In this document: positions 6,001-48,885 of the stretch, in pieces | How the letters are laid out: each line of letters begins with the position of its first letter | How positions within the stretch are numbered: the first letter of the stretch is position 1 | NCBI GenBank assembly: GCA_900088475.1 | Contig: FLMG01001771.1 | Coordinates: forward strand, 30,632-94,631 | Reading direction: 5' to 3' | Length of the DNA stretch: 64,000 nt | From: Hyphochytrium catenoides | Lineage: Eukaryota; Protista; Hyphochytriomycota | Program-made: the position numbers and the translations under genes | The notes under the pieces: generated by a model | The model's input: the letters and a program-made list of their open reading frames with translations, nothing else | The model's database searches: none | What the model was told of the DNA's origin: nothing

Positions 6001-7217
6001 TCAAGAACCAGCAGTCACCTGGCAGTTGAAGATCAAGCTTTTGCTCAACAACTGTGGCACTGATGTCTAACACTCTCTCCACACTGCCAGCAATGCGCAC
6101 TGTAGCCAGTGTCCTGAAGTCTCCCGAGCTTTCTGGGCTTAGTTCTACCTTCACAGTAAGCTTGTTGTGGGGAGCGGCCGTAGTTGGAGGAATGACGCCT
6201 AAAGATTGAGGTAAGCTTCTTTGTATCGCATCCAACCTCCTGACCCTCATCCTTCCCTCAGCAGTTCCATCCAGTTTCTCTCTCTTTCTCTCCCTTCCGC
6301 TCTCTGTCTTTCCCTCCATTCCATCTCCACCACTTCTCTTCCTTTTCTCTCTGTCCCTCTCCCTTTGCACCTTCTTGTACGAGTTCCATTTCATGGTCCA
6401 TCTAGGTTCTACACACATGGAACCTCATCTGATGATGGACATTCATCTAACAGCCGTCAATTCCATATCTCTCACAACTCTCGGTTAGGCCGTTCTTTCT
6501 ACTCCCATCACATTGTCATCCACCCCTTACGCAACCTGTGCACTCCCACTGGCCGTGTTGCTCACCTTCTCGAGGTGTGATCTTCAGTGGCAACTTGTCA
6601 TCGTACGCGATTGAGAACTCCGCATCTCTGTGACCCGTGTTGACGAGCTCAATGCACTGCGCTGCCGGATTGTGCATTGTCACTACTCCCAAGTTCACGA
6701 AGCCATTGAAGGTAATGTTGCCGCGAGGAGGTTTGGCTGTGAGTGGAATCTCTACCATGCCAGCCTCACAATGTACCTTCACGCTGTCGTAGATGTCGGA
6801 TGGAGTCTCAGGATTTTGACTGTTAGAGGTCTTGGGTGCAGGGAGAGTGAAGTGCACCTCTGCCTTGGCCGACATTCCTGGCGCGATTCCACCTGAAGGC
6901 TTGTACTCCAGCCGAAAGTACTTGGTGGTGGGTGCCGAGAAGCGGACCCTAAGCAACTTGCTTGAGTGATTCTGGATCTCCAGAATCGTTACATAGAGAA
7001 TGCCGGGCTCACAGCCTTCGAGATCAATCCGTGGAGGGTACACTCTCAGCTTGCCTCGCACTTCTCCGACGGCTGTAGATGTGGACAGTTCGCTTTCGTT
7101 ATTGGTTGAGGCGCCACGTCCTTGGGAGAGCTTTTTAGGGCTTTCATGAAGCTTTCCATCGCTTGAGCGCTTCGGAGCAACAGCTCCATCTCTCACCTCT
7201 CCAGGCATGGTGGGCAT
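1..7217 (-). CDS. CFAP47: CFAP47-like cilia/flagella-associated protein (repeated ASH/Ig-like PapD-type domains); multi-exon, 3' part continues beyond window start
   Basis: GT-AG spliced exons give repeated 'xDFGxV...L.L.N.G' ASH-like modules (VDFGEVVL, VDFGLFAVG, VDFGEIAVG, INFGECPSG, IPFGILHYG). The N-terminus LRVYPPRIDLEGCEPGILYVTILEIQN...IAPGMSAKAEVHF resembles the CFAP47 N-terminus as I recall it. Confidence 0.7.
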
Positions 7218-30609: not shown

Positions 30610-33600
30610 ATGAATTCATTCTTCTCGTCTCCACCTGCTACCGCATCATCACCGGCGGCCACGACGGCAGCAGGGCTCTCTCCCCTGTCAGTAGAAGGCC
30701 GTATAACAAAGGAACCTCCTCCACCATCCTCTTGTTCTGGTGGGAGGAGGGGAGAGCCAGAAATGGAGCGGATTGCTGCAGATCTTGCCCCCAAGCTTCT
30801 CGACAGCACAGCTGGAGAGACCGAGCAAAGAATAATGGAGGTAATTAGGGTGGTCCCTCGGCCGCCAAGCGTCATGTCCGTCGTTTCTCCGGTTTGCAAA
30901 GAAGAACAACATCCAACTGAAGAACAACCACAGCAGCAGCAGACGGGGAAGAATGAACACTTTCTCCCTTTGTCAGTTCTTCCTACACCCCGTCGTTTCC
31001 CTCCTCCTGATCCTTTCAATCCTCTTCTTGCTGGTCTTCTTCCTGTACAGCACCAGACGCCGACAGGGCATCAGCAGCCATCAACGAGGGGCCAGTCATC
31101 ACCAAAGCATACCTCTGGAAGCTTGAGGAGTAGTGGGTCACTAGGGAAGAGAAAAGAAGCTACATCTTCGTCCTTCCCACAGGACAACAACCGAACGGAA
31201 GCAAAACGTCCGATGACCCGGCAACAACAGAATGGATCATCGCAGAAGGAGGACCTGTGCTTCACAACTCGGCTTCAACTGCGCACGATAGCAAATAGGG
31301 CTCGCAAACTGGTTGAAGAGGCACCTAGTCACTGCCTGACCGAAGAACAACTTAGGCAACGCCTGCAACGCAGCTTCGGTGCCAAACTTTATAATCTCTA
31401 CAGAGAGTTAGACTATCCGGGGCTGCTGCAAGCCTACTACTTAAAGATTGCAAATGGAAAGGAGGGGTTTGAAGAAAAAATGGTTTGGCTGTTGGACTCC
31501 GACTGGACCAGCAGTTCCGCACTCTATCCCTCCGCTTCCTCCCCCATGATCCTCTCTTCCATTCCTAAAGAAAGACCCTCTCCTCCTTTCCCTACTACGG
31601 AGGCACCATCTCCTTTGCCTCTCATACAGTCGCTGCCCCTTCGCCCAGCAGCAGCTCCTGGAAATGCGCATTCCTCCTCCTTTTACCCTGGATGGGGTCA
31701 GCAACCGGCGTGGGACGCCATCCCGTGGATGAAAAGAGAGTCAGACACGCAAGGGGACGGCTTCCATCCAAGGCTGGAGGAAGAAAGCGGTGGCAGGATG
31801 GAGAGTGCCTTGGGGAGAAGGAAAAGACAGAACCAAAGGAGCCTGTGTGCCTTGAAGGTGGGATCGGTGACTGACGATAGGTTGGACGCCGAAGTGCCAG
31901 TATTCTATGTCTCAGCGTCCACATCCCAAAAACTTCTTATGTTGATAGAGGAAGAGCTCTCGCGATGCTCTGAGCTCTCACTATGCTTCCAAAAACCAAA
32001 GCTCGGGGAACTCAGGACGAGAGACAAAGAGCCCGCTACTGTCTGTTGTTATCTCCTCACCATTCTCTCTGTGTCGGCTGCTATATCTACTGCCCCATCA
32101 CCGCCGGTACATAATTATGCCTCATCTTCTTCCTTTGCTTCTTCCAGCACGGCGCTAGGTGGAGGGCGAGAAGAAGAGAAGGGTGGCCAAGAAAAGAAGG
32201 TCTTCCTTTTCGAATTGGCACCTAAAAATGGCTCTTCCTACTACCCTTCGTCGCCCATAAGTGACCTGGTTCGCCGTGTTATTGCGCGCCCTGGGGTCAC
32301 AAAAGCCGTCTGGACAGACGAGGACGCTCACCTTCCTTCGGGCCCCTGGCAATTCTTCTTAGGGGCCAACCCGATGGGAGTCTTTGACATTTATGAGGTG
32401 TCCAAGCAGCTCTCTGCTTTCTTGTCCTGGAGCTGTTTACCCGGAGGAGCAGGCAAGAGAACTGAGGAGGAAGATCGTTGTCCATCAAATACGGTCGGTG
32501 ATCTTAGTCTGAACAAGCTGTTGAAGCTCTTCAATCTGCCTGTAAACAACCTTAAGGAGATTATGGCCAAGGAGATGACGGCCATCCTACAGAACGAAAG
32601 CGGAGAGAAGAATAGACGCAGAAAATGGACATTCATGCTGAGAAGTCAGCCCATGATCCACTGCGCGACATACGATGTACTGCATCTTTTGGAGCTGAAG
32701 AAGAAGCTGGAGGAGAAATGGAAAGAAGCCTGCCGATCGCGCTTTTCCTGCTCCTCTTCTCATCAGCCATCGGTTCCCCCTTTTGCTCTTCCTCGTCCTC
32801 TTCAAAGTGGGAGTCCTCCGGATCCATCCAAAACAGGAGAGTGTTTCACCAGTCAAGAGATGAGGGACCGCTTCCTTCCCTTTGGCGTTCCACTCTCTCT
32901 TTGTTTTCATTGCGACGTAGATCCTCCGTCCGGGTCGGTACTGTTCCTTCCACTCTATAGCCTGCTGAAGTCTTCTACTGCTTCTGGCACCTCCTCCAGC
33001 AGTAGTGTGAAGGCAGACAAGAATGAGCTTAGGAAAGAGAAGATGGAAGAAGACAAGGATCAACGACAGGCTAGCGAGAAGACACTGCTTAGAAAGATAA
33101 TGAGCAAGAGTGCTTTTGGGACAAGAAGAGAAGCACAACTAGAAGCCAAGAAGAAGGTAAGAGACCTCCCACCACCACTCCTTGCCGGACAGCCGCAGCC
33201 ACGGCAGTCCATTAGTGCCTCAGACACAGTAGAGGAAGAGAAGAGACGCCACGGCATTAGGAGGCCAAACGCAGGCACTGAGGAAGGAAGACCAGCACAC
33301 CGCAGAGGTGCTGAAGAGGGAAATGGAAGAGGAAGAGAATCCGAGAAGAAAGAGCAGGAAGGAGGCGAGGGAGAGCGACGGGGACATCAGCAACTTGTAG
33401 GTATATATGGCGCAGCGCTACTGCGGGACATTGTATCCTCTGTCGGAGGGACTCAGGGTACTGCTGGTGCAAAAAGGCCTTCCATTCTCATCCTGGGGCC
33501 GCCAGGCGTAGGTGGGTTGCACCTGCTTTTTTTGGGGCTACAGCTCTTCCCTTGAGGTCTGTTTCAGTCCTCCTTCGCCCCACCTCGTCCTAGATATTAT

Positions 33601-35209
33601 CAGCAATTCAGGAGGATCGGCTGTTGATGCGTGGAAGCCTTTCTTCCATCTCTTATCCACCTCTCGGTTTCGTCGCCCTTCTCTCTCTCGCTCGCTCTTG
33701 CCTGATTCAGGGAGCTCTATAGATGATAATGGGTCTCCACCATTCATCGACTACCGATATACTTGTTTATCATTGACCATGTTCCCCAACCTCTGTGCAC
33801 CATTCTCTCTGACGTCTGCCGCCATCCTCCATCCTCCTAGGGAAGACGAGTCTCTTGAGAGACATTGCCTACGAGCTTGCGTCCACTCTCTATGGCAGGA
33901 AAGTGGTAATGGTTGACACTTGGGGTGAGTTTGCAAGATATGACACCGAGGTGACGCCGTCGCCAGCCTCTGGCAGACGAGTTGTGCATCAGGTGCCGGT
34001 GCGGAAGAGAGAGAAACAGTTCGAAGTAATGTTGGACGCAGTGCGTACTTACTGGCCCGAGGTACGGTGCCCAAAACGATGGCTGTATCGCTCCTTCCTA
34101 CATAAAATAAGGGCACTCTGTCTTCTCGTGCACCGTCCGGCTTGCAACGTGATCTTTTGTTCGATTCCCTCTATTCATCCATGTCAGCTCCATTGATCTG
34201 CGCCACTGCATCTAACCCTTCTCTTCTTTCCACCTCCAACCTGCGCTGGCCCTCCGGATTCCTTCTCCTCCCCGTTTTGGTCTCACTTTCTCATCCACCT
34301 CCCCCGCGGCAGGTACTCGTTATCGATGAGATCGCTGGCGATGACTTCAAGGAGACTGTTGCCCTCCAGTCTATTGTTGCTAGCCATGGAGTTACGCTGA
34401 TCGCCGGCGTTCGTGGGCACCGCAACCTTCTCTTAAATCTACTGAAAGATCCGCCGCTTGCAGAAGTAGTCAGAAAAGGAGGGAAGGGGGAAATGACTGG
34501 AATGATTCTGGAATCCCGAGAGGAAGAAGAGGATTGCGCGAAGCAACCGGAGCGGAACAGACCTGCACCAATCTTTGCCGTGGGGATCGAGGTATCAGCA
34601 GCAGGAGGGTCCTCTGTGTCAAATGTGGTCTCCTCGTCATCTTTCCTCCTCCTTCGCGTACTGGTGCCTGGTAGCGTGCTCCGCTTCTTAGTCTAGATTG
34701 CCTCCTTCACCTTCTTCCTTCTGCTTAAGCCCTGGCTTCCTCTTTCCTTACTACTTGTCTTAGAGGTGTGCCGAGACCTCCTCCGTCATCCTTCGCCATG
34801 TCTGGGGACTATGATGTCTAAACGTACATAGAGCTAACGTCGTGACATGTTCTGGGACAACAATTCGTAGGTGATAAGGAGGAACTGCTACTGGATCCAT
34901 TTTGATCTTCCAATGTCGGTGAACGCTATACTGTCAAACAGAGGACCTGCTACCTCTGGAGCAAGAATGGAATTGAGATATATTGCGGATGCCCAGCAAA
35001 CTGAAGGCAGCGGTGCCTGTCATCAAGTTCCTGTTCCGTACCCCGCATCTCCCTCTTTCTCGTCCTCGGTGTCATTAGACGACCTTGCAACCGAGTATCG
35101 GCCTCTAATGCAAGCAATCCTACAGCCTTCCTTCTGGAGCTTCCAGGTGCAAACGGAGTCAACAAAGGAGGTAGAGCACCTGTTCAGCTCCGTAAGGAGA
35201 GTGAACTGA
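30610..35209 (+). CDS. Paralogue A: LOTUS-like + degenerate EXD1/Egl-like 3'-5' exonuclease fold + partial Ycf45/SpoIIIAA-type ATPase (~1246 aa; exons 30610-33511, 33841-34061, 34313-34591, 34871-35209)
   Basis: GT-AG splicing restores Walker A ILILGPPGVG|KTSLLRDIA and Walker B VLVIDEI. Exonuclease-fold remnants [42 protein letters not shown]. Colinear with paralogue B. Confidence 0.75.
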
Positions 35210-37572
35210 TCTGTAGGGATGAGGAGTCCAAAAAAGACGCCTCAAAGAAGAAGATTGAGAGGAAGTAGCATTAGCAGATAACTAACGTCAAGCAAGTTCA
35301 ACTTTGGAAATATAGAGAAGATAGATGGTTTTAAGAGCAGCACCCGTGTGACAAACAGTTCTATTTTGTGGATGCGAAGCGGCTGGGCAGCAGCGAGGTC
35401 AACGGCGGATCAGAACAATAATAATGAAGCGTGAATGCAAATCACCCTACTAACCGGTGGCCAGGGGGAGAAGTAGAAGAAGCACGTTGGTGGAAGAGTG
35501 CTCCTATAGTTGACGGGAAGAAGATGAATGCAATAATAAGAATGTCTGTCATACGAAGCACCATCCATCGCGGCCAAAAAGGCTAACGAATAGGCTAATA
35601 AGGAAGCAACTAATACTGCTGGTCTGCGAAGGAGATGGTGCTGGCCGTAAGTGGAGGTGCTGCTGGTCGTAAGCCGTGGACAAGACGAAGAGCGAAACGT
35701 AGGAGCGGATCAATATCCTTCACCCTGAACGAGGGTAGATTCTAAAATATTATATAGTTGAAATGGTGGTGGTGGCAAAGGAAGTGAAGGAGTCTCTGTA
35801 GGTAGAAGTCGTTGAAGGAAGCGGGTCAGCTGGCTGCTGCTGCCTGGTGGCGGAAGGTCGGTGAGTCATGATGATGACACGAAGTAGTAGTAGCTAGTAG
35901 AGGAGGTGAGTATAAAGCATGCCTTTTATCTGCTGCCGCTTCTATCTGCAATGATGGCGCTTCATAGTGATGATGATCATAAATAAAGAAAGAGTAGTCA
36001 ATGACAAGCTCTTGGGCTGGCATACATGGCAGTGGCACCAAGTACAAGAGGCGACGCGCCGACATCCTAAGAAATATCAAGAGAAAGTTCTGTTGTCGAT
36101 TTGGTTGCTAAAGCGACAGATGAGGAGGAACAGCATAGAGCGGAGGAGGAGGGGCCGTGGTGGGCAGTGTAAGTGAGGAATATTGTGAGCCCCGGTGGCG
36201 GTGGTGATGGGAGTTGTTGTTCGTGTCAATTGAGAGGAGAAAGCAACAACGAGGAAGACAGGGGAAACCGCGAGGAGGAGAGGAGGTTGTCGATAGATTG
36301 AGCACGCACTACACTCCTACTTACTGCTGCACATCCTTCCATCCTTGTCCTTCCTCCTCTATTTTGTAGTATAGAACGGAGAAGGTGTAAACTCGTAGTT
36401 AGAAATCTAATATAAAGAGAAGCCTGCTGCTAATGGTACATCGAGGTTATTAATAATAAGAAGGACGGGAAGAGATCGCATGCTGCACACCAGGCTGTCG
36501 CCACCATCACCACTACTAGCAAAGCAAGACAAGCAGCAGCAGGAGGCAGTAGTACTAGCAGCATCATCCCTGCTGACGATGGATATGATGCTGCCACCGG
36601 CGGCGGGCGGTGCTGTCGTCGTCGGGCTGCTGTCGCTACCTACGAGCCCTCATCTTCATCATCATCATCTTGGCGCTCTTCTTCTTCTTCTGCCGAGCGG
36701 TACTGCTCTACTACTACCTGCTGTTGGTACAGATGTGGTGGTGGTGGAAGGAAGGAAAAAGGTTGTGGCGGTGGTAGTAGCGAGGGTTCCCGGCGGAGAG
36801 GAACAACAACAAACTACTGCTGCTGCTGCATACTACACAGCAAGCAGCAGAGGAAGCTGGTGGGTGGATCACCATCCACATAGTTCTAATACCATCGATC
36901 GATCGATCATCGCCGCCGCAGCTCGCTCCCTCCGCCCCCGCCGCCGCCTCGTGTGACGGCCTGCCAGTGGGTTCACAGTACTGTTTTATTTATTATTGAC
37001 TACCAGAGAAAAGGCTTGTTTGCAGTAGTTGTTAGCGAGCGGCTGGTGACCCACGCTGTGCATCAGACTCTAGAATCATACACGGGTAATCCCAGGAGCA
37101 CAGGAGGTGTACATAATGCCGTTACCGGCACTATGAGCACCTTGGTTGTGCTTCAACAATAGGAAGAAAGAAAGCTTGGCCCCAGGACTTCTTCAGGCTC
37201 TCCAGCAGCTGCGTGCTGCAAGGGATGCCGGCTCCCATCATTATCGCAGGAGGAGGAGGTGGAGCGCGGCGGCGTTGGCTTGCGGGGCGGCGGCACGAGA
37301 CAGCTGCGCAGACATTCTGCCGATAAAGATCCACCGAGGACAGAGTGAAAGGAGATCGTCCAACGGCACGATATGCAGCCAGAGGACCAAGCAAGACACT
37401 GTAAGAGAGTTGCGTCTCATATAGTCATAGGGACAGGCACACGAGGAGGGAGTTTGATAGTACGAGTTCGACCACGCCAGAGGCAGCTTTGCCCAGCCAA
37501 TGATGAGACCGAGGTGAATGCAGCCCAGAAACACGTCCACGCAGGGTGCGTTTCACCTGAAGTGAGCGAAGT

Positions 37573-40500
37573 ATGAAAGAGGAGACGAACTTCAACCTGC
37601 GGGACGACGTTGCAAGTGGCCGGGAAGGAACAGCCCTTGATACTTCTCAAGACTCACCACTGTCTCATTTGAAGCATGCAGCAGAAACTTCTCAAGAAAC
37701 ATCTACTGGCTTTCAGGGGTCCCCAGAAGCCAACCGAGAAAACCAAGCTTTACCGTCAAAAAGTGGGGAGTGGCCCTACCCTGAGGCAGATGATTGGAGA
37801 CGAAGGAAGCGCACGGCCCCCGTTGGCAATGCTAACGTCCAAGACCTAAAGAGGGCGAGGAAGATAGATCCTATGGCATCAGCAGAAGCAGTTATTAAGC
37901 GTATCTCTGTTGTTGCCCGAAGCAAAGTACGTCGTGCATTGCTCGGCTACATAGAAAAGCAGACCCTCTGTTGCGCCCTGGGCCAAGAGTTCGGCCGTCA
38001 GGACTACCAGCTTTACAAAGAGGCCGGCTTTCCCGGCTTAAGAATAGTGCTCGGGCCAGAAAAGAACAAGAAGGGAGGAGACATGGCAAAGTTCGTGCTG
38101 GATCCTCCCTGGCAGCCGGATGTGCATTGTTTGTCAACAGATTTTAAAAGTAGTACCAGCTTCTCTCAGGACCAAGGCCACCCTCCAGTGACTTCCTCAT
38201 CCTACTTTACTCCTTCTGTGCACGCATCTTGTGCTGTACGAGAGCCTGTACCTGATTTCCGTTGTGCAGACGCGGGAACTGGCTGCGTAGACAGCGTTCT
38301 TAGCGAGTGCTTGGAGGACCGAAAGCCTGAGGGGCGGCTGTCGGCGCTGTTTGCCGGAGACCAGTGGGTGAAACTGGCCGTGGAGCATGTAGTGGATCAG
38401 GACAAGAGCAAAGTCCCGGTCATTCTCATTGAGAACTCTACTCCTCCTGCCGTTCTAAAGACAGTTGAGCAGGAGATGCTCTCCAGCAATGAGCTCTCTA
38501 TTAGTACTCAAGGAGAGAGAGGACAACAGAGCATGACACGTACTTATCTTGTGCAAATCCTCGCCAGCAGATCTATGTCAATGTCTTCGTTTGCTTCATC
38601 CACAACCCACACCGAAAACACAAAGTCGAGGCAGAGGACAAGGAGGAACAAGAGTCTCTTCCTCTTTGACATGTCCTGTCATTCTCCTTCTGCTCCCATG
38701 TTGTCCGTCATAGCCTTGCTGCGAAAGACTCTAGAAGATAAGGGTATGAGTAAAGTCTTCCATGATGCTCGGAGCGATGTCAAAGCGCTATGGACCAGCT
38801 TTGGCATTCGCGTGACAGAGTTCTTCGACACGCAAGCTGTCTTCAGGAACATTCAGTGGCAGGAGGAAGTCATAAAGAGACTGTCCTCATCCTCGCGCTC
38901 CTCCTTCTCCTCAAGCTCATTTGACGAATTGGCTCTTGCGTTTGACGGCCCTTTGGACGGGAAGATGCCGTGTTCAGATGAATGGAAGAGCGAAACGATT
39001 CCAGAAACACAACGAGAGCTTGTTGAAGGGCGATGTCTCCCCCACAGTACCATGATGTCGCTCAATGCAGTGCAAGAACGCTTCGCACTTCCTCTCATTC
39101 CGCATACTGCTGAGGTCCGAATGAAGCTTGGGCTTATTAAGGAAGAGAAAGGCGCGGAAAAGAGGTATGAAGAATGGAAACGGCTAATCAAGAGCAAGAT
39201 GATGATTCTCTACGCTGCTAATGAGGTTCTTCATCTGTTGGAGTTGAAGGAGAAGCTAGCGCAGACATGGCAAGATATTGCCCAGTGCTGGAACAATGCC
39301 TATTTCTCTCCCTTTGACGAGTCTCTTGGTCTTGGGGACTGTCTGTCTGCTCCTGCTGCTCTAGGCGTCCCCTGCGGGGTTCCCCTCTCCCTCTCGTTCA
39401 AGAAAACGGAAAATGTTCCGCGAAAGGCAGTATATCACCCTCAGTATGGACTTCTACACCATCCTGCCGAAGTACAGCCAGAGACTCACGGCGTACAAGA
39501 TCCAGCAGCTGGCCGAACCATAGAGAATAATGGAACAGACTCTGACTATGAAGCAGTCAAGAAAGCGATTGATGTTGAGAACGATAGAAGAGAACAGGAG
39601 AGAGTACTCCTCACCCGGGCACTCAAGTTCTTTCCAGGGCCCTTGGCAAAGCAACTGCTTCAAGCCTGCAAGGAAGAGACCATCGCTGGCAAGGCAGTAG
39701 TAGAAGTTGTGCTTGACTGTGGTCGCCTTCCCTATCTTAGGCTATCAGATGGATCTTGCAGGGACGTGGGAACATACGAGCATCCTCCAATGGACGAGGT
39801 TGAAGCAGAAGCTGCTCTTGAAAGGAGCCAAGAAGCCTTCAATGAGGTCATCAGACATCTTGAAGACCTCGTAGCAAGGTTAAAAGGGATACCCTGGGAG
39901 CAAGAGCGGCGGCATAGGCCTTTGTATTCCCTCATACCTGCTGATAATAGGTTAGGCTTGCCTGGTGACTTGCATCGCCTCAGCTTCATTCGCGGCCGGT
40001 CTCCCGATCAGCTCCTTGGGCTTACTTTGAGAGTTGGGCGGCACATATCTGGCACGACATCTCTTCTTCAGGACGTGGTGTCAGCTTTGGGCAGAAGTGA
40101 GGATGTAGGGGGCTCGAAACCATCGCTTTTGCTGCTTGGTCCACCAGGAGTGGGTATGTTTTTGCACTGCCTTCCTCTCGTCTGGGTGTCTCTTGTCCTA
40201 GGTCAATCTCAGTGAACTAATCTTGCTTTTGCTCTATGCCTCATGTTGCTAGGGAAGACGACCCTACTGAGGGAGATTGCCTATGAGCTCTCTTCAATTT
40301 ATGGCAGGAGCGTTGTGGTCGTGGATACTTCCAATGAGATTGCTGGGGATAGTGATGTGCCACACCCCTGCATAGGCAGAGCCCGTCGGATGCAAGTACC
40401 TGACAAGCAGCACCAGCACCATATTATGCTGGAAGCCGTTCAAAACCATACTCCCGAGGTGAGAACGGCGTACAGGAATATCATTAGCCCGTTCCTCCAC

Positions 40501-41400
40501 TTGGACTGTCAATCTCTTTTCTCCTTATCTGCAAGGCTCGCCACCCTTATTGACCCCTTCCTTTAGATGCTTTCTCCGTAGTCTGGGTCGGGCTACGTCC
40601 TCTGCATCCACTTTCTTTTTTCTTTTTCCTTTCTAAGCTGGAGTCCACATGGTTGGTGTCATCTGCCACTGCAGGTGCTCGTTATTGACGAGATCGGAGA
40701 GAGCTCTGAGGTGTTTACCGCTCGATCTATCGCGAATCGTGGCGTCAGCTTGATTGCCACGACTCATGGCCGGAATCTCTCCGACGTTTTGCGGAATCCA
40801 GCGCTGCTGGGGCTTGTTGGTGGACTTCAAAGGGTGATATTGAGTGCCGGTGAAGTTAAGGAACAAGATGCGAAGAGTAAGACCAGAATTGAGAGAGCGG
40901 GGGCGCCAGTGTTTTCCATTGTGGTGGAGGTAAGGAGAAGTCACCGCATGTTCACTTTCTGCTGCTGCTTGCTAAATCAGGTCCTCTCTCTCTATCTCGC
41001 CGTCTCTCTCTCTCTCTCTCTCGGTGCCTCTCTCTCTCTCTCTTGGATGACTCTACTTCCATATTGTGATCTCTCTTTATCCTTCTTTCTTTGTCTCCTT
41101 TTACCTTTGTGCTAACTACAGCGCTCTGTGAAATGTTTCAAACTTGTGACACAGATCTGGGGTAGGAACCACTATTGCATCCACAGCAACGTCGGGAAAT
41201 CGGTAGACGCCTTGCTTTCAAGAAGGCCTGACCTCGCTAGAGTAGAGACAAGATATTTGGAGCAAGCACAGACGGGCAATAGTGGCTCAATGCAATCCCC
41301 CATCACCGAGATGCGGGCTGTCCTACAACCCTTGGACTGGATGAAGGAGAGACAATGGGGGGAAATAGACGAGCTGCTCAGCTTAGCGCGGAACGTTTAG
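37573..41400 (+). CDS. Paralogue B: LOTUS-like + EXD1/Egl-like DEDDy exonuclease fold + complete Ycf45/SpoIIIAA-type AAA ATPase (~1095 aa; exons 37573-40153, 40253-40458, 40675-40929, 41155-41400)
   Basis: Exonuclease: [55 protein letters not shown]. Ycf45 motifs: [45 protein letters not shown]|[46 protein letters not shown]|[40 protein letters not shown]. Confidence 0.85.
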
Positions 41401-42816
41401 ACACGTAGCAGGCTAGGTAGCTTTCGCAGCGCTTCACCCTTCAATCTCCTCTGACATACTACTCCGCAAGATGGCCATTCAGACACGGACATAGATACTG
41501 CATTTGGGAGTTTAGAATAATTAGATTAACTGGCTTCTTATGTGTATACGACTGCAAACAAAGAGAATCTCAGCTTCGCGCTGAAGAGAACTTGTGAGAC
41601 TTTCATATGGGTGATGGGAGACGATCAAGCTCTTGATAGGTGACTTGTAATAATATTGACCTCGATAGTTCAAGGCTGACGTTCATTATTCTTCGACGGA
41701 CCAGAACCGATCATCGTCTAAGTAGCAAGAAGGGCTGAGACTTAGATTGCCAAGGGCTGCTCGTATTCAAAAGCTGGCCTCCATACTATTCACAACCTTG
41801 CCGGGTCCCTGACCGATGAAGCTGCTAATGCTTGTCGTCGATGAGGAAGACTGTCAAGTTAAATGTGCCCAGACGCTCGGGTTGGTCCCTTTAATGAGTA
41901 AAATCAGTTTGTATACAATCGTTGCTAGGGCAGGTATTCCAGAGCGCCCTAGCTGCATGGAGAGGAGGACGTGGTGCGGATGAGGAGATGAAGCACGGAA
42001 TGAGTGTATTGTCAAGAGGAAGAGAAGTGAGGAGAAGGTACTCTAGGGCTCTAGGGACTGTTATGGAGACGTTGGAGCTCGCTGCCTCCACGGAGATCTG
42101 GCTCTGGTGGTTTGCTAGTGCTCACCAGGTACTAAAGTTGGACACAATGACGTGTATCAGAAGGTCCTCCTTCGATGTAGTTGCTCCCCGTGGCGGAGAG
42201 GGGCACTTGGAGTCTCTCATCATCTCATCATCCATCAGCTGCGACGCAGCTTCAAAGGCTCGTTGAGCTCTTTATAAAAAAGCATTGCCGCCTCCCCGCC
42301 CTGAGCCTTGACCCATTACATGATTACTTACTTACTGTAACTAAGGTTATCACGAAAAGAGGTAAATCGATAACTTAAAAATAGTTCCAGGCCACTGATG
42401 AGTTCAGTAGCTAGTTCAGGAGTTCACTCTTACTGTGCGTTGTACGTGTAGAGTGCAGTATGAAGCGTGTCTGCTTCCCAGCTTCGCCAGCACATACTCA
42501 AAGCTCCAAACCACAGGACCGTGACTCCGGAAAGTGCTTGCGATAAGGCATGGCCTCGTACAAAAGAAATATAGTTCTACCACGTTTGCCATGACAGTTC
42601 CTTTGCCGGATTACGGAGTTTTTAGGGATCTTGGATGACGGTGTAGAGCAGAGATTGTCCACCAAGATTTCTGGCCCACTTTGTTGGATTGGACTGTGAT
42701 CCGTTGAAGAGCTGTGCTCACTCAGCGCCACCAGATATCTGGAGACATATCTGGAGCTTCACCCTGCTCATCACGATCAAGGACAGAGATAAAGTCTGAT
42801 CGTAACATTGAACACC

Positions 42817-43592: not shown

Positions 43593-44873
43593 TTACTGCT
43601 GGCTTCTCTTCAACGCCTGTTCCAAGTCTTCCACGATATCATCGATGTGTTCAATCCCAACAGACAACCGAATTAGCTCAGGTTTTACGCCACCTGCCTC
43701 GAGTGCAGCCTCGCTGAGCTGAGAGTGAGTTGTACTCGCGGGATGAATAGCTAAGCTCTTTGCATCACCGACATTGGCCAAGTGAGAGAAGAGCTTCAGC
43801 GACTCAACAAACTTCTCTCCTGCTGCTCTACCTCCCTTGATCCCAAAAACTACCATAGGACCACCCTTTCCGCTAAGATACTTCAGAGCTAACTTGTAGT
43901 GTGGGTCCGTCTGAAGGCCTGGGTAACGGACCCATTCGACATACTCATTTGTGAGAAGATACTTGGCAACTGCAAGAGAATTGGATGCATGCCTCTCAAT
44001 TCGTAGGTGTAAACTTTCTAGGCTGACCGTGAAGAGCCAGGCGTTATCAGGAGCGATGCAGCCGCCAAGATTACGAAGGGGGATCACGCGCATGCGAAGG
44101 ATGTACGCAATCGGACTAAGAGGACCCAAATCATAGGCCCAGCGAATTCCATGATAGCTCTGATCAGGCTGGGTCATGAGAGGGAACTTCTCCGATTGCC
44201 AGTTGAACTTTCCACTGTCAACTACTATCCCGCCAATTGCAGCGCCATGTCCACCCATCCACTTGGTCAAGGAATGCACAACAATGTCAGCACCGAACTC
44301 GATGGGTCTTGTAAGGAAGGGGGTGGAGAAAGTGGAGTCCACAATAAGAGGAATGCCATGCTTGTGTGCAATATTAGCGACCGCCTCGAGGTCCGTAACA
44401 TCCAGGCCAGGATTAGAGGTAGTTTCTACGAAAACTGCCTTTGTCTTTGGGGTGATGGCCTTGTCAAAGTTCTCGGGCTGATTGGGGTTCACGAAGTTCA
44501 CCTTGATGCCAAACTGTGGGAGAATGTCATTGAATTGAGTGAAGGTGCCTCCATATAGGTTGTTGGCGGAGACAATCTCGTCTCCAGCTTGGGCGATGTT
44601 AATGATAGAGTAAAAGATCGCGTTTGTCCCCGAAGCTAGAGCGAGTGCGGCAGCTCCACCTTCCAAGTCTGCCACTTTCTTCTCAAGGGCATCAGTGGTC
44701 GGGTTCATCAATCGCGTATAGATGTTGCCAAGTTCCTTGAGAGCGAAGAGGTTTCTTGCGTGCTCAGCGCTATCGAATACATAGGAACTAGTGCGATACA
44801 CGGGAAGCTGGCGAGCCTTAGTGGTAGGATCGGGAGCCACCCCGCTGTGTACTGCCTTCGTCTCTAGACGCAT
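43593..44873 (-). CDS. metY: O-acetylhomoserine/O-acetylserine sulfhydrylase (MetY/Met17, PLP-dependent Cys/Met metabolism family), intronless
   Basis: MRLETKAVHSG, GNIYTRLMNPT, LYGGT, PLP-lysine motif VVHSLTKWMGGHG, LFSHLANVGDAKSLAIHPASTTHSQL, IRLSVGIEHIDD. The frame stays open upstream to an ATG at 45056. Confidence 0.93.
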   Translation of the reverse strand: MRLETKAVHSGVAPDPTTKARQLPVYRTSSYVFDSAEHARNLFALKELGNIYTRLMNPTTDALEKKVADLEGGAAALALASGTNAIFYSIINIAQAGDEIVSANNLYGGTFTQFNDILPQFGIKVNFVNPNQPENFDKAITPKTKAVFVETTSNPGLDVTDLEAVANIAHKHGIPLIVDSTFSTPFLTRPIEFGADIVVHSLTKWMGGHGAAIGGIVVDSGKFNWQSEKFPLMTQPDQSYHGIRWAYDLGPLSPIAYILRMRVIPLRNLGGCIAPDNAWLFTVSLESLHLRIERHASNSLAVAKYLLTNEYVEWVRYPGLQTDPHYKLALKYLSGKGGPMVVFGIKGGRAAGEKFVESLKLFSHLANVGDAKSLAIHPASTTHSQLSEAALEAGGVKPELIRLSVGIEHIDDIVEDLEQALKRSQQ

Positions 44874-46052
44874 GATTCTCTTCAAACGCTGACGATTGTA
44901 GTTGATCCGAAAAGGTGTCCCTTGAAGCTCTTGAAGACTTGCGGATGTGGGAGCTAAAGACACAATGCCAAGCCCCTGGACAGTGAACAGTGCTGCCCAC
45001 GCGTCGAGGGCTGCTGACTGTGTTTGGTACTCTGTGTCCTTTGCCGAAGTCATCATCCAGGAAGGAAGCGGTGAACGGTGAGTCAAGCAGGAAAGGAAGA
45101 GCTCAAGGAAGGAAAGCGAAAAAAAGATCGTGCCCTCATCACATCAGAATCCTTGAAGGATGAAGGGGCCCACCCATCCTAGCTTATATTCACAGAGGTG
45201 GGCGGGTGGGAATCAACAAGTGGCTGACAGTAATAATACCACATGGATGAAGATAAAAAAAGGGTGTTCGTTGTACTTTCCGTAGTAGTATGCCTATAGT
45301 TTCTGGTACCATTTCTGTTTGGAGAAGTGATCAGGCTTCCTATTGGGTGGGAGACAGCAACAGGCGTTCCCATTGGCGAGACTCTGGCCAATGAGGAGGC
45401 GTCTGGCAGACCCCATCAACATGCAGCTCTCGATGATGTTGAACGATGAACGACTGAGTCTGCCGCAAGACAGAATGAGGTTGAGATGCAACACTATCTA
45501 TCAAATGTCAATGTTATCGAACAGCCAGAGACGTGCGAGAGATATGTGACTTATTAAGGGCAGATCTCCAGGCCTTGACATGTGCCATCAGCCATCAGTG
45601 AGCTTCAACATGCCAAGCGAAATGACAGATCTCGTCTCTCATAAGAGATGGGTCAGACTTAGCAAGGATGCTCCGCGATAGTTCTCGCGGGAGAGACTCC
45701 AGCTGAGATAGCCAAGGCAGATTGAGCTTTGTCGGAAGAGGTGCTACTTCTTGCAGCCAATAGTTCTAAATGTGGGGCTACTCGGTCATTCAAGCTAAAC
45801 CCAGTAGCGGTGGAGACGCCGATGATGAAGAAGCAGAGCAAGCATCGAGTTTTCACGGTGATTCTCTCTAGAGACCCGGTGGCGATAATGTGAACTTGTC
45901 TCATAGAAGATGGTACAAGTGGTGCAACCAGACATCTATCGCCCGTAATCCTTCCTGAGGTAGCTAGAGAAAAGTGTAAGGACAAATGCTGACAAATGCT
46001 TCTACCAAACTGTCTGATCCATTAGCTGGACTTAGGTCTTCCATTCTTTGTC

Positions 46053-48885
46053 TTATTTCTTGTCATACACCTCCAAAACCTTTCCAATAGCAATTGTCCT
46101 CCCTTCATCACGAAGGGTGAAGCGACCTAGCTGTCGCATGTCCTCGAACTTTTCGACACAGAGCTTTTGCGGCATTTTCAGCCTGCACGTCACCCACGAG
46201 CCCTGCTTCACGTAGGTTGGGTTCTTCTTTACCTTCTCCTCACCAGTTTTCTTGTCCTTGGTGGTCTCAGAGATCAGCTTGGTGACCACGCACTCATCCG
46301 AAGCAGTATGAGCATGAATAACCGACTTGTATCCAGCACTAAATATTGGCCGATGCTCCAAAAGTTCCACTAGAAAGAGCAGCGCCTTGAAGTGTGTCAC
46401 TGCCGGACAAGGCTTGTCTACGTCACATAGTACGTAGCCCTTCTGGATATCTTCTAGGTTGCAACCTGAGAGTCTGAAGACTACATTCTCTCCAACCTTT
46501 GCCGTCTTAACGGGCTTGTCGTTGATAAGGATTTGCGAGATAGTGACAGTTACCCCCAAGGGCATCACCACCATTTTCTTTCCAGCATGAGCCACACCTG
46601 CCTCCACCTTTCCCATAGCACAGACTCCTCTTTCTACGTAGCGGTCCAGGATGGGTACTCTGACTGGAGCGGTTGGGTCTCTGCCCACTATGGTCATCTG
46701 ATCCAAGGTCTCTAGCAGAGACGGGCCTTGATACCAGGAGCACACATCTTTGGAGAGCTTCAGAAGGGCGATAGTAAGATTAGCATAGTTGAAAAACAGG
46801 GTGGGCTACTCTGGTGAGAGTCTAGGAGTGGCAGACCAGTGAAGAGCTTTGAAACAAGACGAGATACGATGCGTTTTTTTGGGGAGAGCCCCACAATAGT
46901 GACGGAAGAAAACGAATGATAAGCGGAAGCTGAGGGAGAATGCCCAGTGGTAACTCACCCTATCCTTCACATTTTGCCCAGGCAATGCGGCTATGGGCAT
47001 AAAAATGACATCACGCTTGACAGCATATCCGCAGCTCTGAAGATAAAGAGTAAAGGTGAACAGAAGAAATCCAAGCGTGACCCGCTAAAAGACAGGCAGA
47101 CCTTGAGGAAGGGCGCAAGCTTCTTGTGACACTCGTCATAACGAGCCTGATCCCATAATACAGTCTTTTCGTCCATTTTGTTGATGACAACGATGAGTTT
47201 GTTCACACCAAGAGTCTAGCATGAAAGAAGCATGCGATAGTCAACGTGAGAGTCAGAGTGTGGTCCGTCGAGGGAAGAGGACAGCATTGAAACACTCGAA
47301 AGGAAAGCATATTGTTAAGCAGAGCACATGCGTACCCCCTACTGATACACTTGCAGCTTGTGGTATCGGCAAAGAAGAAAGGTACAAGCTGGGGAAATCG
47401 GCTCTACCTTGGCAAGCATCGCGTGCTCTCTAGTCTGACCACCCTTCTCAAAACCTGTCTCAAACTCTCCCTTTCTCGCAGAGATAACCAACACGCCAAC
47501 ATCAGCCTGGGCGGCTCCTGCAATCATGTTGGGCACATAGTTCTTGTGACCTGGGGCGTCCATAATGGTAAACCGCTTATTGCTTGTTTCAAGGTGAGCC
47601 CGTCCCACCTGGAAGAAAGAAACGTTATAACATGGAAAGAGGTAAAAGCCCACAAGGATGGATGAAAGACAATGGCGCCTGACATTGCTGAGGGGGGCTA
47701 TTTGACTCACGGTGTTAGCGTTGTACCTACCTCTACTGTGATTCCCTTTGCCCTCTCTTCAGAGTTCGTGTCCATAATAAATGCCAAGAACCAGCTCTCT
47801 CTGTTCAGCTGTAAGGGGACGTAACAGTCATTAGGGGTTAGCGAAATATAGGGCAATGTAATAGGAGAAATAAAGGCAAAGTAGCATACCTGTTTGGCTT
47901 CTCTCTCAAAGCGCTCAATGGTTCTCTTGTCTACAGCTCCTGTGTGGTATAAGATACTACCGGACAAAGTTGACTTCCCGGCATCTGTGACATCAATAAA
48001 GGTCAGAGATAATGTCAGGAGATAGTGAGGGCATATTACGGAGATCGGCAACCAAGTGGTAGGAGGCTCTGCCAGGGCTCAGTATAACACTGAAGTACGG
48101 CATAGTACAATAGGTTGACTGCAGATGTAGAGCATGCACTACTGGACCCACCGACATGTCCGATGAAAACCAAGTTCAGATGCTCGCGAGGATCTTCTTC
48201 TTCAATCTCAACATCTTCCTCCACCTTTATAGTGCTTCCTGTTAGCGGCCTATAACACCAATCACTTCACGAATTACGCACTACTTTCGCACCTGACCAT
48301 CCTCCTCTTCCAGCGCAGCACCCTCGAGCTCTTGGGTTAGATCTTCTACGCTGTCCTCTGCAGCCTTCTTAGGAGAAGGATTGACAGCTTTCTTTGGCGA
48401 GGGCTCCACAGCTTTAGGCTTCTGCTCATCTGTAGCAGGCGCTGGATCTGCTGGAGCCTTAGAAGCCTTTGGAGTCTCCGGTCTTGGGCTCGTTGCCTTG
48501 GGTCTAGGCGAAACCTCCTTTGGAGCCTTCTTGGGCGAGACTGGGGTAAGAGAACATACATATTCGTAAGGATGGGAGATCGAGCATTAAGCGACACGCA
48601 TAGGAGTCATGCCTGGCGCTGCAGCGTGAGGTGGTGGTGCAGGTGGTGCTGGAGCAGCCGTTGCTGCAGGAGGGACCGGAGCCGGGGGCGCAAGAGATGC
48701 AGGTGGAGTCCATGCAGCAGCAGTGGGCTTAAACGTGAAGGTTTTCGCCTGTGGGTTGAACTTGAAGTTGCCCTGCTTCTGATCGTCTGTTGCAAGAATA
48801 GCGTGTTTAGTGTGACAAGCATAGATGTGGCCAAGAAGGTGTAATGATCAGCAGTACCAGCGTGGTCTTCCCAGGAGTCTGCCAT
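46053..48885 (-). CDS. GSPT1: Eukaryotic peptide chain release factor GTPase eRF3 (Sup35/GSPT); multi-exon
   Basis: [103 protein letters not shown]-terminal PAM2-like motifs. Confidence 0.95.

Follow-up and report, generated by a model that had tools for sequence, protein, structure and literature searches.

Within a 64,000-nucleotide stretch of Hyphochytrium catenoides DNA (contig FLMG01001771.1, positions 30,632 to 94,631; hereafter the window, in whose own numbering all coordinates are given), two neighbouring genes on the + strand, gene 1 (30610..35209) and gene 2 (37573..41400), encode proteins in which a LOTUS-like winged helix is followed by an exonuclease-homology domain (ExoHD) and a Ycf45/SpoIIIAA-type ATPase. 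Both exonuclease domains have lost catalytic residues and the ATPase of gene 1 is degenerate, neither of which was mentioned in the initial annotation of this DNA. The fusion of an exonuclease to Ycf45 recurs in other eukaryotes; what is new here is the tandem pair with a dead nuclease within this unstudied family. We favour, with a probability of roughly 55%, a reading in which the gene 2 protein is an ATP-driven binder or remodeller of RNA or ribonucleoprotein (RNP), which uses a non-cutting exonuclease fold together with the LOTUS-like helix, and in which the gene 1 protein is its regulatory or scaffolding partner.

The gene models start from two long + strand open reading frames (ORFs), 30610-33555 (981 codons) and 37573-40215 (880 codons), each with three short ORF pieces downstream. 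Splicing yields four exons for gene 1 (30610-33511, 33841-34061, 34313-34591 and 34871-35209; 1246 amino acids, aa) and four for gene 2 (37573-40153, 40253-40458, 40675-40929 and 41155-41400; 1095 aa). All introns are GT-AG and the reading frames are open once spliced; the window as a whole is eukaryotic in character, with about 50% GC and short GT-AG introns. The three introns have identical positions and phases in the two genes. Intron 1 is in phase 1 and lies within a Gly codon of Walker A (GPPGVG^KT, the caret marking the intron), intron 2 is in phase 0 between PEV and LVIDE, and intron 3, also in phase 0, follows the (I/V)E that closes a conserved strand. When spliced gene 2 was compared with P0001, a Ycf45-like bacterial protein, the BLASTP alignment was unbroken over all three exon junctions, which validates them by homology. 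The exon junctions of both genes are thus homology-based, and the 5' ends are predictions. Just six ORFs of at least 220 codons occur in the whole window. Far the longest are those that begin genes 1 and 2, with first exons of 2.9 and 2.6 kb, so that in their 5' three-quarters the two genes are unusually intron-poor compared with the neighbouring genes.

Judged by a similarity far above chance, genes 1 and 2 are clear paralogues. In BLASTP comparisons their ATPase halves, the C-terminal third of the proteins, share 40% identity (E 9e-44), and the exonuclease regions share 25% identity over 465 columns (E 1.8e-7). The linker motif GVPLSLCF at 32884-32907 of gene 1 has its counterpart in GVPLSLSF at 39376-39399 of gene 2, and towards the C-terminus both proteins carry (M/V)E(L/T)RY and (A/I)(V/I)LQP..W. 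Hence, the initial annotation had described the architecture of the pair correctly, as two co-oriented paralogues of about 1100-1250 aa with three introns at identical codon positions, one of them in Walker A, and with common linker (GVPLSL.F) and C-terminal motifs. The tandem position, the identical introns and the private motifs GVPLSL.F and LQP..W fit a local duplication, which would have been followed by strongly asymmetric divergence.

The exonuclease-homology domain of gene 2 (38452..39276, + strand, aa 294-568) matches Pfam PF01612 with an E-value of 9.6e-12 and 45.5 bits (cut-off 23.6), and a hidden Markov model (HMM) of the family exonuclease, built without the window copies, detects it with E 1e-23. 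The corresponding domain of gene 1 (31876..32769, + strand, aa ~423-720), supported by the family HMM and the paralogue alignment, is degenerate; Pfam gave no PF01612 match, and the family HMM reached E 4e-7 over the C-terminal half only. The closest solved sequence to the gene 2 domain is the ExoHD of Drosophila Egalitarian (9uju_C, E 1.2e-6). A profile built from 15 intact family members likewise ranked Egalitarian first among the PDB entries (E 5.4e-48), ahead of the T. brucei RNase D TbRND (7c42/7c45, identified through PMC7797062; E 2.5e-33), Rrp6 (E about 1e-25), EXOSC10 (E about 1e-22), NanoRNase C (E 6e-20), EXD1 (5fiq, E 4e-18), RNase D (E 1.5e-14), Mut-7 (E 6e-13) and WRN (E 4e-8). 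Egalitarian, TbRND, Rrp6 and EXD1 all act on RNA and all stand above WRN in this ranking, which places the family exonuclease on the RNA-acting side of the superfamily, specifically beside Egalitarian.

The motifs of the family are v-a-v-D-c-E-g (ExoI), K-V-x-H-D-c-r-x-D (ExoII), D-T-Q, and Y-A-A-x-D (ExoIII), and the catalytic set D-E-D-Y-D is intact in 35 of the 45 full-length fusion relatives and altered in 10. In gene 2, ExoI (38494-38514) reads LSISTQG, with Asp replaced by Ser and Glu by Gln. ExoII (38752-38790) keeps its Asp, and ExoIII (39208-39237, Y...E) keeps its Tyr and has Glu in place of the last Asp, so that the set becomes S, Q, D, Y, E; the invariant His and the DTQ are also kept. 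For gene 1 the set is C, Q, an unrecognisable ExoII, C and D. Its ExoI reads LSLCFQK, the invariant ExoII His is lost and the ExoIII Tyr is replaced by Cys, with the ExoIII helix retained. Downstream of ExoIII come an L(S/T)F element, conserved and strand-like, and a low-complexity linker.

In DEDD nucleases both ExoI carboxylates are essential and coordinate both metals. As both proteins lack the ExoI Asp and Glu, genes 1 and 2 are predicted to encode pseudo-nucleases, while the family as a whole probably acts as a nuclease. The residues that gene 2 retains (the invariant His, the ExoII Asp, the DTQ and the ExoIII Tyr, together with a Glu where the last acidic residue belongs) would be compatible with a non-canonical active site, through which the window copies would degrade RNA fed to them at the expense of ATP, like the intact members of the family. 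Against such an activity stands the replacement of both ExoI carboxylates in each copy, by S and Q in gene 2 and by C and Q in gene 1, and Egalitarian and EXD1 are precedents for inactive folds that bind RNA; we regard active nucleases at this locus as highly improbable. The dead site predicted here has a parallel in EXD1, an adapter of the PIWI-interacting RNA pathway that binds RNA and is catalytically inactive.

The ATPase of gene 2 (39697..41400, + strand, aa 709-1095) is a complete Ycf45/SpoIIIAA-type domain that includes the N-domain of that family, with Walker A at 40138-40155, split by intron 1. In BLASTP, aa 709-1036 align with P0001 at 45% identity over 329 columns (E 7e-66). P0001 is a 517-aa protein in which Pfam recognises Spore_III_AA/AAA, a PTPase-like domain and R3H. 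An alignment of 16 family sequences defined the invariant motifs as Walker A GxxGxGKTT, DTSNEI..PH..IG.ARRM, QNH.P, Walker B DEI, AHG and GG, and gene 2 keeps all of these positions: the N-domain, Walker A, the DTSNEI and QNH motifs, Walker B as VIDEI, ATTHG and GG. The ATPase of gene 1 (33415..35209, + strand, aa ~936-1246), traced across the introns by BLASTP and motif alignment, is degenerate. Its match to P0001 covers the P-loop part only (37% identity over 208 aa, E 6e-20), and of the invariant motifs it has Walker A and Walker B only. The motifs DTSNEI..ARRMQV, QNH and THG are lost, with DTWGEF, RTYWP and AGVRG in place of the signatures, and a low-complexity stretch occupies the place of the N-domain. 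The single-exon Pfam scores for the ATPase stayed below threshold because the introns split the domain. The R3H and PTPase-like domains are absent from both genes, the proteins ending 40-60 aa past the ATPase. We know of no defined biochemical activity for the Ycf45/SpoIIIAA family; SpoIIIAA is kin to the secretion-type hexameric ATPases.

Upstream of the exonuclease domain, AlphaFold2 models revealed a winged helix-turn-helix of topology a1-b1-a2-a3-b2-b3 in both proteins, at 31243..31506 (+ strand, aa 212-299) in gene 1, with a predicted local distance difference test (pLDDT) score of 84.4, and at 37867..38115 (+ strand, aa 99-181) in gene 2, with a pLDDT of 77. For gene 1 the first match was the LOTUS domain of MARF1 (5yad) both in Foldseek (E 0.015, probability 0.99) and in VIA (Z 8.4, root mean square deviation 2.2 Å, 69 of 73 residues), where the next match was 1.6 Z lower. 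VIA also placed MARF1 LOTUS first for gene 2 (Z 8.0, 2.4 Å, 68 of 71 residues), and the TDRD5 LOTUS domain scored Z 6.1 with this helix. Pfam found no OST-HTH (PF12872) match at E<=1 in the N-terminal blocks of the window copies; among the N-termini of 20 orthologues it returned one OST-HTH/LOTUS match (P0002:1-90, E 5.7e-5) and two weak WH_Egal matches (E 0.024), and a profile of the N-terminal domain run against the PDB gave chance-level matches only and no LOTUS chain. The modelled fold supports, but does not prove, the assignment as a winged helix most like a minimal LOTUS domain. In several orthologues (P0004, P0008, P0022 and P0075), two LOTUS-like blocks stand in tandem ahead of the exonuclease domain, reminiscent of the domain repeats of Egalitarian.

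The domain identities given in the initial annotation, LOTUS, EXD1-like exonuclease and Ycf45-type ATPase in both proteins, thus hold to different degrees. The LOTUS assignment agrees with the top structural match of both copies, but no OST-HTH profile recognises either of them. The exonuclease is borne out in gene 2 by PF01612, with Egalitarian rather than EXD1 as the closer relative, and in gene 1 it is traceable in the C-terminal half only. The ATPase is firm in gene 2 and reduced to a degenerate P-loop part in gene 1.

Winged helices are commonly DNA binders, DNA proofreading exonucleases and that of WRN fall within PF01612, and R3H binds single-stranded DNA as well as single-stranded RNA. 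By analogy with WRN, the two proteins might therefore act on DNA in repair, replication or recombination, the winged helix serving as the binder and a Ycf45 ring as the translocase; forkhead, MarR and cullin WHB domains were indeed found at Z 6-7. The exonuclease profile, however, is about 40 orders of magnitude nearer to Egalitarian, and at least 17 nearer to Rrp6, than to WRN, and in both copies the best match of the winged helix is an RNA-binding LOTUS domain. A role on DNA appears very unlikely to us.

In a tree of Ycf45 domains, genes 1 and 2 are sisters with weak support (SH-aLRT, the Shimodaira-Hasegawa-like approximate likelihood ratio test, 62). Gene 1 has a terminal branch of 2.21 and gene 2 one of 0.31, where the family median is 0.45; by branch length, gene 1 is the fast-evolving copy, about seven times faster, and gene 2 the conservative one. 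The resolution of the tree is too poor for testing a single origin of the fusion, and the 'solo' rows within its fusion clades are probably truncated metagenomic genes. The long branch raises the question of whether gene 1 is a decaying duplicate without a function of its own, so that gene 2 alone would matter. Its branch of seven times that of gene 2, the missing Pfam match, the loss of the Ycf45 N-domain and of most invariant ATPase motifs, and the unrecognisable ExoI and ExoII would all be expected of such a relic. Yet gene 1 does not look like a clear pseudogene, with a first exon inside an unbroken ORF of 981 codons and canonical splice sites throughout. Four in-frame exons with canonical GT-AG introns and an open first exon of this length would be very unlikely to persist without selection; moreover, the winged helix models confidently (pLDDT 84), and gene 1 still has Walker A and B, the ExoIII helix and the motifs at the C-terminus. 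Decay without function is thus unlikely, and we prefer to regard gene 1 as a diverged partner of gene 2.

Sequence variation bears on gene 2 as well. In a variant DNA haplotype, exon 1 of gene 2 differs by in-frame indels only (33 nt at 38246 and 3 nt at 39352), whereas just upstream of the ATG the indels (+6 and +1) break the frame, which argues for purifying selection on the gene 2 frame. Among the coding single-nucleotide polymorphisms (SNPs) listed for the gene 2 haplotypes, 5 of 17 are synonymous, a number too small to interpret. Over 35450-41449, the DNA run X2 contains two haplotypes, each at about half depth and rich in SNPs and indels, which suggests either a diploid, heterozygous source organism or a run made from a diverged strain. 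Within intron 3 of gene 2, a CT-rich low-complexity tract (40984-41045) has a summed contig depth of about 4e5, compared with about 350 elsewhere, and many loose ends. This tract is a genome-wide simple repeat and not specific to the gene.

To place the pair, homologues of gene 2 exon 1 were collected with HMMER from 1.8 billion representatives, which yielded 224 matches; word-indexed protein searches with the same query gave nothing, or a single bacterial Ycf45. The ten best matches (680-918 aa) all contain PF01612 followed by Spore_III_AA/AAA, and both domains are present in 60 of the 152 cluster representatives that were fetched, so that there are at least 60 fusions. Named members come from the green alga Parachlorella, the Amoebozoa Planoprotostelium, Amoeba and Balamuthia, and the chytrids Synchytrium and Chytridiales; their annotations read hypothetical, 'ATPase-like' or 'stage III sporulation protein AA'. 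In the ESM Atlas, the nearest cluster is mostly from Oomycota; it has Spore_III_AA in 97% and PF01612 in 70% of its members and is followed by clusters of Egalitarian and EXD1, all with scores below 0.9 that serve as leads only. No close orthologue of either window copy was found in the searched databases; the best matches have about 40-50% identity, in the ATPase only. Homologues of YCF45 in Phytophthora and Naegleria, protists that lack plastids, were already listed in 2009 with the function 'unknown' (PMC3087521). Our literature searches found no published work on an exonuclease-Ycf45 or OST-HTH-exonuclease-ATPase architecture. Taken by the spread of its homologues, the exonuclease-Ycf45 fusion is an old, widespread and unstudied eukaryotic family, and this genome is not alone in having the architecture; the initial annotation had rightly cautioned that such fusions might pre-exist as unstudied predictions.

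Among proteins of known structure, Egalitarian (9uju, 9rvy) offers the closest parallel to the N-terminal part of the window proteins, as it also has LOTUS-like winged helices N-terminal to a PF01612 domain. The 2026 structure of Egalitarian with BicD shows three LOTUS-like winged helices, then the ExoHD and a tetrahelical XAD, and the folded domains constitute the RNA-binding region (PMC13186709). As LOTUS-like domains and ExoHD make up this module, the N-terminal two-thirds of the window proteins mirror it. Egalitarian differs in its three LOTUS-like domains, the XAD, the regions that bind BicD and dynein light chain, and the lack of an ATPase. In the window proteins a single winged helix is recognisable, an XAD is not evident, and the C-terminal part is a Ycf45 ATPase; we do not class them as orthologues of Egalitarian. 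The Ycf45 proteins of bacteria, cyanobacteria and plastids (PF19568) resemble gene 2 in the opposite half: ATPase and N-domain are 45% identical to P0001 and all invariant motifs agree. These proteins, however, are about 500 aa long and carry PTPase-like and R3H domains at the C-terminus, in place of which the window proteins have the N-terminal LOTUS-like helix and exonuclease domain.

The eukaryotic fusions, represented by PRP75988 (Planoprotostelium fungivorum), TPX34359 (Synchytrium microbalum), GAB4817299 (Parachlorella kessleri), KAL6076254 (Balamuthia mandrillaris) and the Oomycota cluster of the ESM Atlas, have the same domain order as the window proteins, frequently starting with one or two LOTUS-like helices, and share with them the motifs after the exonuclease and at the C-terminus. 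Most of them, the 35 of 45 noted above, have an intact DEDDy site and a length of 680-1000 aa, whereas the window copies are longer and contain low-complexity inserts, their nuclease site is dead, and the ATPase of gene 1 has decayed. EXD1 (5fiq) and TbRND (7c42/7c45) belong to the same exonuclease subfamily as the fusion family but are small proteins, with a single domain or a zinc knuckle, that have neither a LOTUS nor an ATPase domain. TbRND is an active trimmer of mitochondrial guide RNAs (PMC7797062).

The LOTUS-like and the EXD1/Egalitarian-like domains could be taken to place the pair in a small-RNA silencing, anti-transposon or antiviral pathway, like EXD1, TDRD5/7 and MARF1 in animals, and the fast evolution of gene 1 together with the local duplication would fit a pathway driven by conflict. 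Within the window, though, the pair is not linked to Argonaute, Dicer or RNA-dependent RNA polymerase, and our searches found no supporting literature. The nearest solved relatives work in mRNA localisation, guide-RNA trimming and exosome decay, with EXD1 well below them, and the fusion family extends to lineages and architectures in which the nuclease is intact, which suggests a general role in RNA processing. A silencing function is, in our estimate, rather improbable.

The function we favour, an ATP-driven RNA or RNP binder with a diverged partner, would operate as follows. RNA would be bound by the winged helix and by the dead exonuclease fold but left uncut, in the manner of Egalitarian and EXD1. 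The ATPase of gene 2 would probably form an oligomeric ring, like its distant relatives of the PilT class, and this ring would spend ATP on moving, unwinding or remodelling the bound RNA or RNP. The gene 1 protein, hydrolysing ATP weakly or not at all, would be a partner or regulator, which may co-assemble with that of gene 2. RNA is the likely substrate, given what the nearest relatives do: Egalitarian works in mRNA localisation, TbRND in guide-RNA trimming and Rrp6 in exosome decay. The motor also gives a hint: its accessory differs, R3H in bacteria and a LOTUS-like helix with ExoHD here, while the motor itself stays constant, so that it probably acts on single-stranded nucleic acid, and the exonuclease subfamily points to RNA as that nucleic acid.

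Several observations weigh against this reading. RNA binding, oligomerisation and an interaction between the gene 1 and gene 2 proteins are inferred. A run labelled as RNA gave, over 35450-41449, one contig of 211 nt within exon 1 of gene 2 and zero spliced joints; the run bears the label of a different organism, and the contig could be DNA. Compared with the PDB, the family ATPase profile found no Ycf45/SpoIIIAA structure and mostly AAA+ Walker A segments, and its longest match, to PilT over about 120 positions, is weak (E 6.6e-4), although it fits the kinship of SpoIIIAA with the secretion-type ATPases. For the winged helix, the AlphaFold2 models derive from a shallow, poorly aligned multiple sequence alignment of 22 sequences, the Foldseek search with the gene 2 helix was not significant (E 0.49), and a VIA Z of about 8 is borderline, lying at the noise boundary stated for the tool. 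The Z scores of 6-7 for cullin WHB, forkhead and MarR-type winged helices come close behind the MARF1 LOTUS match, which exceeds such generic winged helices by 1.1-1.6 Z and covers about 95% of the target. Finally, gene 2 may have residual or altered nuclease activity, given its ExoII Asp, its ExoIII Tyr and the Glu at the last acidic position.

At 43593-45086 on the - strand, an intronless ORF of 497 codons encodes an O-acetylhomoserine sulfhydrylase (PF01053, E 1e-133). Its product has 72-76% identity to hundreds of bacterial-type proteins of 423-426 aa, one of them from Verrucomicrobia, and an N-terminal extension of about 70 aa; a homologue search with this product returned bacterial-type sequences only. 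The gene is a candidate for a bacterial gene transfer into an intron-rich eukaryote, or for an organelle-targeted enzyme. Two exon-sized ORFs on the - strand look like ordinary neighbours, one at 46053-46745 with domains 2 and 3 of EF-Tu/eEF1A (an eEF1A, HBS1 or eRF3-like GTPase) and one at 6516-7217 with a flagellar-associated PapD-like / Cep192-D6 domain. Rfam gave no match over the window.

Ycf45/SpoIIIAA ATPases are conserved from bacteria to plastids, and the exchange of R3H for an Egalitarian-type module lends circumstantial support to an action on single-stranded nucleic acid, probably RNA. The fusion family would be a deep, non-animal and mostly catalytically active relative of the LOTUS-ExoHD module with which Egalitarian recognises RNA, and as such it bears on the origin of an mRNA-selecting adaptor from an inactive exonuclease fold. 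A bolder extension, which we hold to be speculative and rather unlikely to be correct, is that the animal LOTUS-ExoHD of Egalitarian stems from this ancient ATPase-coupled family, and that the dead copies would join a nuclease-intact member in a mixed, ATP-powered Ycf45 ring, where the non-catalytic subunits would choose the RNAs and the active one would process them or pass them on; if true, such a ring would be a type of RNA motor undescribed in eukaryotes. The tandem pair itself presents two stages of decay side by side, one copy with a dead nuclease and the other with both nuclease and ATPase degenerate, and thereby provides a natural series for asking which of the activities matter.

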